Assembly: GCA_965153285.1 (NCBI GenBank)
Contig: OZ229112.1
DNA: 64,000 bases
Source of the DNA: Podarcis tiliguerta
Taxonomy: Eukaryota
Direction: 5' to 3' (one strand)
In this document: positions 28,969 to 55,595 of the stretch, one piece after another
Numbering within the stretch: position 1 is the stretch's first letter
Layout: each line of letters begins with the position of its first letter
The notes under the pieces: generated by a model
Seen by the model: only the letters and a program-made list of their open reading frames with translations
Told to the model about the DNA's origin: nothing
Database searches by the model: none
Program-made: the position numbers and the translations under genes

Positions 28969-29149
28969 GGGTGCATCCTCCTTCTTCAAAGCCATAAAAT
29001 CCATGAGCACAGCGGTCACACTTCTTTCCTCCAACACCTGGCTGGCAGTGGCACTGTCCAGTCTCATCACAGTCAAAAGATTTGGATCCAAATGAATTAC
29101 AGTTGCAAGGAACACAGCCTCTGGATGACTGTACGCCAAAGGTTCCAGG
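28969..29149 (-). CDS. LAMA2: LAMA2 exon 21 equivalent
   Basis: tgacag|CCT...C|gtaagt; 181 nt; PGTFGVQSSRGCVPCNCNSFGSKSFDCDETGQCHCQPGVGGKKCDRCAHGFYGFEEGGCT(R). Confidence 0.96.
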
Positions 29150-30902: not shown

Positions 30903-30947
30903 GTTAGTGTATAACAACACAGACACATGCTAGAATGCAATGCATGC
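30903..30947 (-). promoter_or_regulatory. Putative intronic splicing enhancer cluster downstream of the cassette exon (2x GCAUG RBFOX core, 1x ACUAAC QKI)
   Basis: Minus-strand GCATG at 30943-30947 and 30926-30930, and ACTAAC at 30903-30908, all within 70 nt of the exon-20a donor. Confidence 0.5.
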
Positions 30948-30969
30948 TGTACATGGTCTTTTTGATTAC

Positions 30970-31233
30970 CAAAGAGGCAGGTTTGAAAGCACCTCTCGGG
31001 CACCCACTTGCACTGGAGTAGCCCCATCTCTGATGAGGTGCTCTGATTTGCTGAGCCGGTAATGGGTTTTCCTTCTGGATATACACCTGTCTGCTCAGCT
31101 CACATCGTTTACCAGCGAATCCTGATTTACAGATACATCTCCCTGACACATCACAGTTTAGTGACATGGATCCTAGAGGATTGCATCCACATGGTGTACA
31201 GAATTGCTTTTCTGGAACCCAAACATAACCAGG
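30970..31233 (-). CDS. LAMA2: Additional in-frame cassette exon ('20a') of LAMA2, 88 aa, one extra atypical LE repeat
   Basis: Long pyrimidine tract then tcaaaag|CCT...TTG|gtaatc; 264 nt, phase 0-0, no stop; PGYVWVPEKQFCTPCGCNPLGSMSLNCDVSGRCICKSGFAGKRCELSRQVYIQKENPLPAQQIRAPHQRWGYSSASGCPRGAFKPASL with LE-type Cys spacing. Confidence 0.85.
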
Positions 31234-32747
31234 CTTTTGAAGAGAAAGAGAGGGAAAACAAGTTAGAAAACAAAGTTGTACAAGAAAAGGTTAGAAGAGA
31301 AAGAGCAAGAAGTCTATTATAAATATTTGTACACCAAACAATTTGGTTTTCTTATTGTACATATGGAATTAAACTGAACCAACTAAAGATTACATAAATT
31401 CAATGTCCTTTTGTTTTACACTTAAAACTATCATATGCACATCTTATAAAGTCCAGTAAACTTTGCGCTAAACTACAACCGATAAAGCTCCAGTAATGTA
31501 AACACATCCGTATCTAGTAAATGAGCTAATGCCAAACATGATAATAATGGGGGTTGAATCCAATTGTGCTGATTCGCTCATGCAAGAACTTTTGACCCAG
31601 TGGTCACCTCTGCCAATGTAAGGGAGAGGCAATTTCCACCAACTCCATCTCACCCTGCAGTCCGTTGCACCCCTGAAAATCTGTTTCAGAAGGTTGGGGG
31701 ACCCTCCAGAACAGGCATAGAGGGTGACAGTGGGTAGAAAGAACTGATAAAAATTGCTTTCCTCCTGTTGGATTAAAAAGCCACTAAAAATGAAATTCTA
31801 TCCTGAGAGTGCTATTGAGATGATCATGTTACTTTTCAAATCCCAGTTTTTTACTGTTGATATTTTTTTTCTAATTCTCTTAATGGCTTCGTATTGTAAT
31901 TTCCCCCATAGAAAGTTAAAGTGCTCTAATGAAACATTCACACAGGAGAGAAATAAAATAATATTTCAGGGGAAGCCTTTGAAGTTCCACAGATGACCAC
32001 AGCACAGAATCACTTTCCTATTTTTCTGGACAGCCTTACCCATTTATTGGGCCAACCTGTTTCACTCATTTCAAATTGTTTATTTCAAATGCTTCGAAGG
32101 TTTGCTTTATTGTTGTAAACACTGACATAATCATTGTGACCAAGGTGTGAGATGAGTGGTCAGAAAACAGGTAACCGACCTAACCTCTTTTTTAAAAAAC
32201 AAAAGCAAATGGACAATGAGTCCACAACTGCACTGAATGATAATTCTAGAAGCCAAGAGGGTTCTTCCTTATGTTTTCTTTCTGAGAGACCCTTCTGTAT
32301 TTGTTTATAAAATTCAAAAAAAACAAACATGTGAATCATGATGCAACAATGCAAAAGGGGTGTGTTCCGCTCATTTTCTTTCTTTCTTTTTTCATGTCAA
32401 CTATTATGTCAGTTTTTGTTTTTTGTTTTGCAAAGAACTAAAATCTTCTTTATATACATAAAAAGATATTAACTATTCATGGTGTACATTTATTTTGTTT
32501 GACTTAAGTTTTAAAAGGGGATAGATTCTGTGCACCACAAACAACATGTTCCAATTAGCACCAATAATGATTCCAGAAAGCCTTAGAAATAAATTCTGAG
32601 ACACGTATCAAAGGCAGTTAGCACCCTTATTTCTAAGCCCCAAACCACCCTCAACATTTTATTTGAAGAACAACAAAGAGTCGTTATAATATAACACATA
32701 GAAAGGGGAGGGAAAGCAATAAGGATGGATCAGTTTTTATGGCTTAC

Positions 32748-32854
32748 CTTACACTCATCACATCTACGGCCCACCACGTTGGGTCTGCAGTCACACTGCC
32801 CAGTCTTAGAGTTGCAAGTCTCTGAAAATGAGCCATTGAGATGGCAACGACAAG
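32748..32854 (-). CDS. LAMA2: LAMA2 exon 20 equivalent
   Basis: atgtag|CT...AAG|gtaagc; 107 nt; CRCHLNGSFSETCNSKTGQCDCRPNVVGRRCDECK. Confidence 0.96.
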
Positions 32855-33424
32855 CTACATGGAAATAAGAAAGGGTGTCATAATGTAATGCATGCTGGCA
32901 CGCTATGATATGTACATGAAACAGAATGAACTCCACTTTTATCATGTACACACACACACACACACACACACACTGTAACTCTGTTCTTGGTCTACAATTA
33001 GCCCCACAAGAGAAAGAGGAGTGCCACTGCCCTCTCCCATTTTTAATTGACTCAGAACCATGCAACTAGAACCCTGCCATGAGCACACGATCCTGATTAG
33101 GTCACTGATGGCTTCTTCTGTATTTAATGGCAGATGCCAGGCTACACATGCTACATGAAAAAGTCATTGCCTGCACAAATAATGGAATTCTAGTACCAGA
33201 TTATGTGACTTATGATCACAGGAGAATTTTAATAATATAAATACACCCCTGGGAAAGCCACGCAATGCTGTGGCCCAGTAATCCCTGCAATGGATTACTC
33301 CAAGGACACACCTCATGGGTTTCAATGCACATCCATCCAGTATTTCCTTTGGCCACTTCCTACTGGGTGGTGGGTGCCTCTCCCCTCCAGACAGTTCCCC
33401 TAAACCATTTAGCTGTGCTTCAGA

Positions 33425-33758
33425 TAGCCATGTTCAAATATATAAAAGGATGTCACATAGAGGAGGGAGAAAGGTTGTTTTCTGCGGCTCCAGAGAAGCG
33501 GACACGGAGCAATGGATCCAAACTACAAGAAAGAAGATTCCACCTAAACATTAGGAAGAACTTCCTGACAGTAAGAGCTGTTCGACAGTGGAATTTGCTG
33601 CCAAGGAGTGTGGTGGAGTCTCCTTCTTTGGAGGTCTTTAAGCAGAGGCTTGACAACCATATGTCAGGAGTGCTCTGATGGTGTTTCCTGCTTGGCAGGG
33701 GGTTGGACTTGATGGCCCTTGTGGTCTCTTCCAACTCTATGATTCTATGATTCTATGA
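33425..33758 (+). mobile_element. CR1 LINE 3' fragment (5'-truncated, young)
   Basis: Intact ORF2 C-terminus FKYIKGCHIEEGERLFSAAPEKRTRSNG...FLTVRAVRQWNLLPRSVVESPSLEVFKQRLDNH, CR1 3' hairpin and (ATTCTATG)n tail. Confidence 0.93.
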
Positions 33759-43173: not shown

Positions 43174-43307
43174 NNNNNNNNNNNNNNNNNNNNNNNNNNN
43201 NNNNNNNNNNNNNNNNNNNNNNNNNNNNNNNNNNNNNNNNNNNNNNNNNNNNNNNNNNNNNNNNNNNNNNNNNNNNNNNNNNNNNNNNNNNNNNNNNNNN
43301 NNNNNNN
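43174..43307. other. Assembly gap (N run) in intron 17
   Basis: Ns; exons 17 and 18 are phase-compatible, so no canonical exon is hidden. Confidence 1.
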
Positions 43308-43694: not shown

Positions 43695-43939
43695 NNNNNN
43701 NNNNNNNNNNNNNNNNNNNNNNNNNNNNNNNNNNNNNNNNNNNNNNNNNNNNNNNNNNNNNNNNNNNNNNNNNNNNNNNNNNNNNNNNNNNNNNNNNNNN
43801 NNNNNNNNNNNNNNNNNNNNNNNNNNNNNNNNNNNNNNNNNNNNNNNNNNNNNNNNNNNNNNNNNNNNNNNNNNNNNNNNNNNNNNNNNNNNNNNNNNNN
43901 NNNNNNNNNNNNNNNNNNNNNNNNNNNNNNNNNNNNNNN
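43695..43939. other. Assembly gap (N run) in intron 17
   Basis: Ns. Confidence 1.
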
Positions 43940-53657: not shown

Positions 53658-55595
53658 CTGCAGGAGATGAAACATTGAGAATATATTTTAAAAAACGAAG
53701 AAGTAGTGCAGGAGCACATTTGACAAAAATAAAGGAGCTTAATATGTCATTCTGCCTCCTCCAAACCCAGCACCGACTTGTTCTATGGCAGAGAATGTTG
53801 CACTCAGGCTGTTGCTGTGTGCAAAGGTCTGTGGGGTGGCCCAATCCAACCGTAGTATTAGAAAAAGGAATAAAACAGCATCTCTCCAACAAAATATCCC
53901 CACAAATAATTTCTAGCGAAACACAATTACTGGGAGACAGGGACATACCACATGTTACTGAGCAAGAATAATGGGGCAATTACAAAATCATTCAAAGTTT
54001 CAATGATGACCTTTCACTAGAGGACATTCAAGTTGCCCATGTTTGTCTTGTTGGGGCAGGTGGGAAGGCTCCCTGTAACTTGGCACCCCCTTTCCAGGAG
54101 TTCTATGCCCCTCAAGGTGTCCCAGTGTTTGAAAACCACCATGATAAGCAATAAAGACCCAAGTGCTAAAACACCTCTCGAAAACCTATGTTCCTGACAT
54201 GATGTCTGTGAAAAACTGACCTTAACCGAATAGGCAGGTATAAGACTAAAGGAGGCATTAGCTTGCTCTTTCTTCTGAAAAGGTAAGAGAAATGAAGAGT
54301 GGAAAGTAAGACAGCTTCACATACCAAGATTTACAGAATGAAAATAGTTAGAAGACAAGTTACTGAAAGAAAGTGGGGAAAGGAGACAAGTGAGAAAAGA
54401 CAGGATCTTTTATTGACACTGCAAATCATAGCTGAAATACCACGTGAGTTATATTGGTCAAAGATTAATGAGAAGCAGAAGGCAAGGTAGAAAAGAAAGC
54501 ATGCATCACAGGCCTAGTGAGATGGGAGCTGCCTCCACATTGCTGGGAATGTGCATGCACATTACAACCACATGCAAATGCTACATGCCTCTTGCTTAAA
54601 TTTTCCCCAGACCATTGGAGTAATAGAGAAAGCCTTTCCTCAGTTTGGTGATACCAGAAACAAGCATCCTGTTTCTGTTCTCTGTTGGTCTGCCACCCCC
54701 CCTCCCCTTTATGGTCAACCTTTTCACATCTTCCCTCAAAGCAGTAAGGGACAAAGGGGATTGTGCCCTCATAATCTACATCCTGATGCTTTGCTATGTT
54801 ATCTCTCCCTCTCAGTAAGCAGGAGATGGATGGCAGGTGTGCAACACAGCACCTTCTGCGCCACCAGCTAGAACTGCTCAAATTACTATGGCATATTCTG
54901 TACTACTGGCTGGCAAATTGCCCTGCCTACTCAGAGGATGGCAGATGGGGCGAAAAAATGGAAAGTAATTAGTGCGGGTGCCAAACCCTCAGAAAAAGAG
55001 ATTGACTGGGTGAGAACTGAGCTCTAACCAGGACCCACAATAGGAAGTGGACCACATTGGGTAAATCCGGCATACAAACTAAGGCATTTATAGTTTCAAA
55101 TGTCGCAGACATGCTAAATAGTACATTTCACAGTCTAAGAAATAAATGATACTCTTAATGTTGTTAAAGCCGTAAAATAAGTTTAGGCTTGATAAGAAAG
55201 TAAGAATTGCATATATTTGCACAAATTTCAAAATTGTTCCTCATCCTTACCACTTGGCTTCAATATTTCCAGAAATTTTATATCTCTCCATATGTATGTG
55301 GGTCCTCATACAAGAAGTTAATTCTTTATACATGTAGTGATAGCTGTCATCTCAGAATGGGTCATCTCAGAACATACTTTTTGACATATACTTTTAGCAG
55401 TGGTAATTCAGTGTACTTTATTTTTATCAATGGGTATTTCATAGTGGAGGTGACATCTTGTAGGTGTGATTTATTAGCAAAACCCTGACTGTTGTGCTTG
55501 CTCTTCAGAATAAAATGCCAGGCAGCAGTCCTAACCTGCCATATATTTTAAAAATCATTGTATGGTTCTGAATTCAAGGGGAAGGGCTATAGCTC

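Follow-up and report, generated by a model that had tools for sequence, protein, structure and literature searches.

The LAMA2 locus

The window, by which is meant the whole stretch of 64,000 nucleotides analysed from the lizard Podarcis tiliguerta (assembly GCA_965153285.1, contig OZ229112.1), carries part of the laminin alpha-2 gene LAMA2 on its minus strand. The exon map, drawn by tblastn of isoform X1 of the LAMA2 protein from the skink Tiliqua scincoides (P0299) against the window, comprises 16 consecutive LAMA2 exons, which cover skink X1 residues ~704-1543 at identities of 65-97%. The alternative exon lies at 31233-30970 on this strand (264 nt, 88 codons) and aligns with skink X1 residues 970-1058 at 75% identity over 89 residues (E 2.6e-38). 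It is flanked upstream by a constitutive exon at 32854-32748 (minus strand, 107 nt; 77% identity to skink residues 935-973) and downstream by a constitutive exon at 29149-28969 (minus strand, 181 nt; 97% identity to skink residues 1059-1118), which the earlier note on this DNA had numbered exons 20 and 21, respectively.

Translation of 30970-31233 on the minus strand yields 88 codons with zero stops, bounded upstream by a pyrimidine-rich tract with a terminal AAG and downstream by GTAATC, which makes the donor TTG|GTAATC. The exon 5' of the cassette ends in a complete codon, reading ...GRRCDECK with its last base at 32748 and GTAAGC thereafter, and the exon 3' of the cassette starts with a complete codon after CAG at 29149, reading PGTFGVQ... 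(PGTFGVQSSRGCVPCNC). The cassette is thus in phase 0 at both ends and the LAMA2 frame is kept with or without it. The earlier note, which had been made from the letters alone, had proposed just such a stop-free segment of 88 codons, with AAG as acceptor and TTG|GTAATC as donor and in phase 0 at both ends, so that inclusion and skipping both stay in frame; these statements proved exact on translation and border check, as did all four of its splice coordinates (32748, 31233, 30970 and 29149). Chance open frames of about 88 codons occur at several other places in the 64-kb window, and an open frame alone proves nothing; the block stands beyond chance because of its domain match and its orthologues.

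Some further features of the window deserve mention. A second likely optional LAMA2 exon, of 54 nt and 18 codons, lies at 54221-54274 (minus strand) between TTTCAG and GTCAGT; its peptide, K-K-E-Q-A-N-A-S-F-S-L-I-P-A-Y-S-V-K, holds an N-A-S glycosylation motif and matches skink X1 residues 738-754, which are missing from skink isoforms X2, X6 and X8. On the plus strand, at 33265-33678, the intron upstream of exon 20 contains a 137-residue open reading frame ending ...RAVRQWNLLPRSVVESPSLEVFKQRLDNHMSGVL, by its appearance a fragment of a dispersed repeat. Runs of N occupy 43174-43307 (134 bases) and 43695-43939 (245 bases) of an intron.

An atypical LE module

The encoded peptide matches the Pfam family EGF_laminin (PF00053) with a score of 34.2 bits (cut-off 21, E 2.9e-8), with residues 15-56 aligned to profile positions 1-43 of 49. 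The LE pattern that had been read from the letters, C-TP-CGC-x9-C-x5-CIC-x8-C, is found in the translation as described. Three parts can be told apart on the minus strand: the core of the LE module at 31096..31200 (codons 12-46), with C12 followed by C15, C17, C27, C33, C35 and C44; a hydrophilic loop of about 30 residues at 31003..31095 (codons 47-77), with a serine at the site of the canonical seventh cysteine and an invariant W70 toward its end; and the exon tail at 30970..31002 (codons 78-88), which begins with an invariant C78 in the motif G-C-P-R-G-A-[FY]. Invariance is judged here from an alignment of the lizard block with those of 25 named species (26 sequences), from which the mammal-like open reading frames P0005, P0006, P0008, P0009, P0010 and P0014 were excluded, one cluster of these (P0009/P0355) being possibly of human or other primate origin. 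Eight cysteines, at positions 12, 15, 17, 27, 33, 35, 44 and 78, do not vary in these 26 sequences, and neither do P1, W5, G21, D28, G31, G41, W70, G77, R80 and A82.

The six cysteines from C15 to C44 have the spacing of cysteines 1-6 of a canonical LE domain, and the invariant G31 and G41 correspond to its conserved glycines, as in the laminin beta-2 domain of the LE5-LF-LE6 structure 5lf2 and in the LE domains of netrins. Whereas the canonical seventh cysteine stands three residues past the sixth (C-x-x-C), the cassette has S47 at this position and the 25 other species have S, R, G, M, K or N; the next cysteine after C44 is C78, beyond a loop of 33 residues and thus 34 residues past the sixth. 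Because the position three past the sixth cysteine is never a cysteine, and because C78 follows only after the long loop, the cassette is an atypical LE module, in which the seventh cysteine would be displaced. In neighbouring modules the seventh cysteine is followed by C-x-x-G-x-[FY], to which the motif G-C-P-R-G-A-[FY] around C78 is similar; C78 is most likely the displaced seventh cysteine, with the first cysteine of the downstream exon as its probable partner.

Both borders of the cassette fall between cysteine positions seven and eight of the LE repeat, which makes C12 the putative eighth cysteine of the preceding module. With its borders so placed and phase 0 at both ends, the exon would leave an even and pairable set of cysteines in amniotes whether it is included or skipped. 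On inclusion the rod of the alpha-2 short arm would gain one LE module: C12 would complete the module before it, C15 to C44 would make up the core of the new one, and a probably flexible and less conserved loop would then lead to C78, which most likely pairs with the cysteine that comes first in the downstream exon. Outside the amniotes this simple pairing scheme does not fit, since the blocks there have an odd number of cysteines. Codon 3 (31225-31227, minus strand) encodes tyrosine in squamates and in the other sauropsid open reading frames, and cysteine (P-N-C-W-W) in sharks, in ray-finned fishes except medaka, in the coelacanth and in amphibians, where nine cysteines result.

The best match among solved structures is the laminin beta-2 LE domain in 5lf2 (E 5e-8, residues 13-47), netrin LE domains being matched too, and no solved chain found in this search aligned past residue 68. 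An AlphaFold2 model of the exon alone, computed from an alignment of 17 rows, reached a pLDDT of ~70-74 for residues 10-48 and was under 50 over residues 1-9 and 49-82 (overall mean 55), which lends weak support to a folded core followed by a flexible loop. In ray-finned fishes (e.g. P0249 and P0171) the loops have in common a basic stretch, R-R-E-T-R-R-P, at a place equivalent to ~31060-31080 (minus strand), which tetrapods and sharks do not have; this stretch could be a dibasic processing site.

Splice signals and their possible control

The 3' splice region (31234..31300, minus strand) contains a branch-point-like CTAAC at -33 and a pyrimidine tract, the last 60 nt before the exon being 75% C+T with repeated TCTT/TTCT, and ends in a weak AAG acceptor. 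AAG is the least favoured among the common NAG acceptors. The codon before the exon is K in all sauropsid open reading frames that read through the splice sites, which fits AAG, and Q in 9 of 10 such fish frames, which fits CAG, a difference that may point to a loss of acceptor strength in amniotes. The donor in the 5' splice region (30903..30969, minus strand) is weak as well, base-pairing of TTG|GTAATC with U1 being limited to positions -1 to +4.

Downstream of the donor follow GCATG at +23 and again at +40, a TG-rich run from +43 to +57 and ACTAAC at +62. With 1.3 GCATG per kb as the background of the gene strand, two copies in the first 60 nt have a probability of ~0.003 by chance, a figure that was judged post hoc. 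Both copies are pentamers and neither is a full TGCATG, and they have the form and position of an RBFOX-type signal, (U)GCAUG within ~100 nt downstream of the exon. The first ~17 in-frame codons of the downstream flank, an S-M (..ATG) pair among them, are also conserved in two further squamate open reading frames, a comparison made on translations only.

Downstream GCAUG is the element through which RBFOX proteins enhance inclusion, ACUAAY is bound by QKI, and pyrimidine tracts by PTB. Weak splice sites combined with two GCAUG, a UG-rich run and ACUAAC within 70 nt downstream would fit a regulated inclusion, with possible activation by RBFOX-type factors, perhaps also QKI or CELF, in muscle, heart or nerve. 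The arrangement suggests tissue- and stage-dependent activation by factors of the RBFOX type.

Optional use in skink, amphibians and coelacanth

The optional use of the exon can be followed in the RefSeq XP isoforms of other species, which are predicted models. In the skink Tiliqua scincoides, isoforms X1-X4 and X7 include the block and X5, X6 and X8 lack it, the difference being exactly residues 971-1058 of X1. Isoforms X1 (XP_066470560.1, 3247 aa), with the block, and X5 (XP_066470594.1, 3159 aa), without it, come from the same gene and have the same junctions as in P. tiliguerta, and the block of X1 is likewise 88 residues long and 75% identical to the exon described here; the skink belongs to another lizard family, and its block starts with P-N-Y-F-W instead of P-G-Y-V-W. 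In the short skink isoforms ...CDECK runs straight onto PGTFNVQ..., and in the long form the borders read ...CDECK|P...L|PGTF.... The same division is found in the frog Xenopus tropicalis (X1-X5 with the block, X6-X9 without) and the caecilian Geotrypetes seraphini (X1-X6 with, X7-X10 without), again for 88 residues, and in the coelacanth, where several isoforms contain and several lack a block of 93 residues. Skink X8 lacks two other optional segments besides the block and has 3122 residues, as many as canonical human LAMA2. Elsewhere in skink LAMA2 (P0298, P0277) there are an optional LE module of 46 residues, at X1 residues 1633-1678 and missing from X4, and an optional segment of 20 residues, at residues 2856-2875 and missing from X3 and X8.

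Pairs of models that differ by exactly 88 residues in skink, Xenopus and Geotrypetes support the proposal that LAMA2 has an optional, in-frame insert of one LE module. The further description of the exon as hidden does not stand, because it is already contained in public gene models from sharks to skink; the exon is genuine but already public, and no discovery.

The pairs of isoforms also bear on the reading in which the exon is constitutive in P. tiliguerta and the short form absent, which is improbable. It draws on the models of fishes and sharks, all of which carry the block among those retrieved, although the searches retrieve only block-bearing models and are uninformative on skipping, and on species with a single RefSeq model that includes it (Scomber, Amia, Chanos, Microcaecilia and Rhinophrynus). 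Against this, the skink is the only lizard with named models and has both forms, an AAG acceptor and a donor with so short a match to U1 (-1 to +4) are typical of regulated exons, and the human event treated below is partial and dependent on stage. The preferred reading is that of an alternative exon, and both forms are presumably used in P. tiliguerta, to go by the models of other species.

Orthologues across jawed vertebrates

An exhaustive phmmer search of the 88-residue block against 1.84 billion representatives gave 47 matches below 1e-10, about 30 of which span all 88 residues at 43-77% identity, the upper value being that of the closest squamate open reading frame. Most matches are open reading frames of 130-220 residues on genomic contigs, which read through both splice sites into the intron. 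In all of these read-through frames a V (GTN) codon stands directly after the last exon codon, and the position of the donor after codon 88 is therefore conserved. Matches limited to residues 1-50 in various long proteins (P0100, P0116, P0130 and others), where they have comparable positions, were rejected as unrelated LE modules. In the carp record P0023 (Cyprinus carpio, KTG40058.1, 155 aa) the block follows on the upstream exon, ...GRQCDECM, with no intron between them, and both outer ends are intron-like; it is either a modelled gene or an incompletely spliced transcript, and the near-identical genomic open reading frame P0030 has an intron before the block.

Full-length LAMA2 models were collected by searches seeded with a croaker model, which returned ray-finned fishes only, and then with a gar model, which reached sharks, coelacanth, amphibians and skink; with ~105 models in each candidate list, nothing can be read from the lack of birds, turtles and mammals. 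The block-bearing models belong to teleosts, gar, bowfin, sturgeon, bichir, five sharks, the coelacanth, two caecilians, more than 12 frogs and the skink. In the named LAMA2 models the block always has ...CDEC[KML] on one side and ...GCVPCNCNSFGSKSFDC on the other; the lizard cassette likewise has its place between exons of which the first finishes with ...C-D-E-C-[KML] and the second opens with ...G-C-V-P-C-N-C-N-S-F-G-S-K-S-F-D-C. The lizard block is 45-60% identical to those of frogs, coelacanth, gar and sharks, with no frame breaks.

The isoforms X1 of Lepisosteus oculatus, Stegostoma tigrinum, Latimeria chalumnae and Xenopus tropicalis show what is common to these blocks, namely the junction, the eight cysteines, W70 and G-C-P-R-G-A-Y. 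The blocks of fishes, sharks, coelacanth and amphibians differ from that of P. tiliguerta in the additional cysteine at position 3, and also in length, the shark block being a few residues longer and the coelacanth block having 93 residues. Since sharks and ray-finned fishes carry the block in this very place, the exon is ancestral to jawed vertebrates and not to amniotes alone. The earlier note had suggested an ancient amniote isoform, and of this the age holds but the amniote origin does not.

Constraint on the exon

Conservation is uneven along the block. Across the alignment the mean pairwise identity is 69% for the module part (residues 1-46), 42% for the loop (residues 47-70) and 52% for the tail (residues 71-88), compared with 67% for the upstream and 70% for the downstream flanking exon; in these alignments the module part is conserved on a par with the constitutive exons on either side. 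Between lizard and skink the 75% identity of the cassette likewise falls inside the range of 65-97% seen for the constitutive exons in the window.

Exon and intron flanks were also compared within two clusters of closely related sauropsids, using the translated read-through open reading frames as a rough stand-in for dN/dS. In the cluster of P0004 the exon has 0.052 differences per site and the two flanks 0.137 and 0.116, with 17 of 88 columns variable in the exon as against 30 of 66 in the flanks (Fisher p 7e-4). The corresponding values in the cluster of P0003 are 0.023 for the exon and 0.112 for the upstream flank, with 9 of 88 against 22 of 50 columns variable (Fisher p 1e-5); its downstream flank has 0.018 differences per site, a value that comes from only 10 scorable columns. 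The exon is thus 2.4-5 times less variable per site than the better-sampled flanks, which points to purifying selection at the level of these translations. When the window is set against two other squamate open reading frames, the 88 codons align without gaps and the upstream flank is not alignable.

These comparisons speak to a second alternative, by which the block would be a relic, an ancestral exon that this lineage no longer uses, whose frame has stayed open by chance on the way to a pseudo-exon. The weakness of both splice sites and the mere 77% identity of the closest squamate open reading frame would agree with such decay. It is nonetheless very improbable, as no stop or indel has entered the 88 codons relative to the skink while the upstream intron flank can no longer be aligned, the eight cysteines and the G-C-P-R-G-A motif are intact, the divergence from the skink equals that of the constitutive neighbours, and the sauropsid clusters have accumulated several times fewer changes in the exon than in its flanks.

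The least probable alternative, and one that was rejected, is a shorter exon of 147 nt, which would end at CAG|GTGTAT, an internal donor in frame that lies just past the sixth cysteine, and would insert 49 residues and no loop. In its favour are the phase of this site, 0, and a context from -3 to -1 that is better than at the donor of the 264-nt exon. Such an exon would, however, have an odd cysteine count through the loss of C78, and none of the named models, in any species, stops at this point; from sharks to lizards conservation extends to the loop, W70 and the C78 motif, and the V (GTN) codon stands right after codon 88 in every read-through frame.

Taken together, the block is best explained as the P. 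tiliguerta copy of an ancient alternative LAMA2 exon that is common to jawed vertebrates, a reading to which a probability of about 0.85 is given.

LAMA2 exon inclusion in the human heart

A LAMA2 exon-skipping event of 264 nt has been reported in the human heart at chr6:129292803-129293066 (Table S5, Stem Cell Reports 2026;21:102757, PMC12925949; preprint 10.1101/2025.03.21.642423). Its delta-PSI is -0.41, classed as 'More Inclusion in Fetal Hearts' in the comparison of hearts at 18-19 weeks with embryonic hearts at 4-5 weeks, and a supplementary figure legend names the exon as 'LAMA2 exon 21 (LAMA2-206)' (PMC12925949). The event is covered there by the table row and a supplementary panel, with nothing on the encoded protein or its function (PMC12925949). 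Exon 21 of human LAMA2-206 belongs to the same gene as the lizard exon, has the same 264 nt and directly follows exon 20, a match by length and exon number. On this match, the exon would be part of a human transcript, with an inclusion that shifts during heart development. A review of polymerizing laminins from 2024 names alpha-3B alone as a major splice variant and mentions no such variant of alpha-2 (PMC11260871), and a literature search for an alpha-2 LE splice variant, or for its control by RBFOX or QKI, returned nothing beyond the human heart study.

An optional module in the laminin rod

Alternative exons that add whole modules to matrix proteins are familiar from the EIIIA and EIIIB cassettes of fibronectin and the fibronectin type III cassettes of tenascin-C. 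The LAMA2 exon resembles these in adding a module of ~90 residues to a rod-like matrix protein, in frame and under developmental control. The fibronectin and tenascin-C cassettes, however, have the fibronectin type III fold and no disulfides, whereas the LAMA2 exon is offset from the module borders and would so keep cysteine pairing across its junctions. Tentatively, the loop with its invariant W70 and its G-C-P-R-G-A-[FY] end might serve as a binding or processing site under splicing control, and the long form of alpha-2 might have a distinct role in the maturing basement membranes of heart, muscle and nerve in all jawed vertebrates, though this is rather unlikely to hold as it stands.

That a genuine alternative exon with exact borders can be picked out from raw sequence alone is one outcome of this analysis. 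The meaning of the long-form protein and its relevance to LAMA2-related muscular dystrophy make an interesting question, which is not new to this window; the exon lies outside the canonical human transcript, and disease variants in it could therefore be overlooked. Among laminins it would be a rare case in which a whole module of the rod can be added or omitted with cysteine pairing undisturbed, and the retention of the exon spans well over 400 million years.
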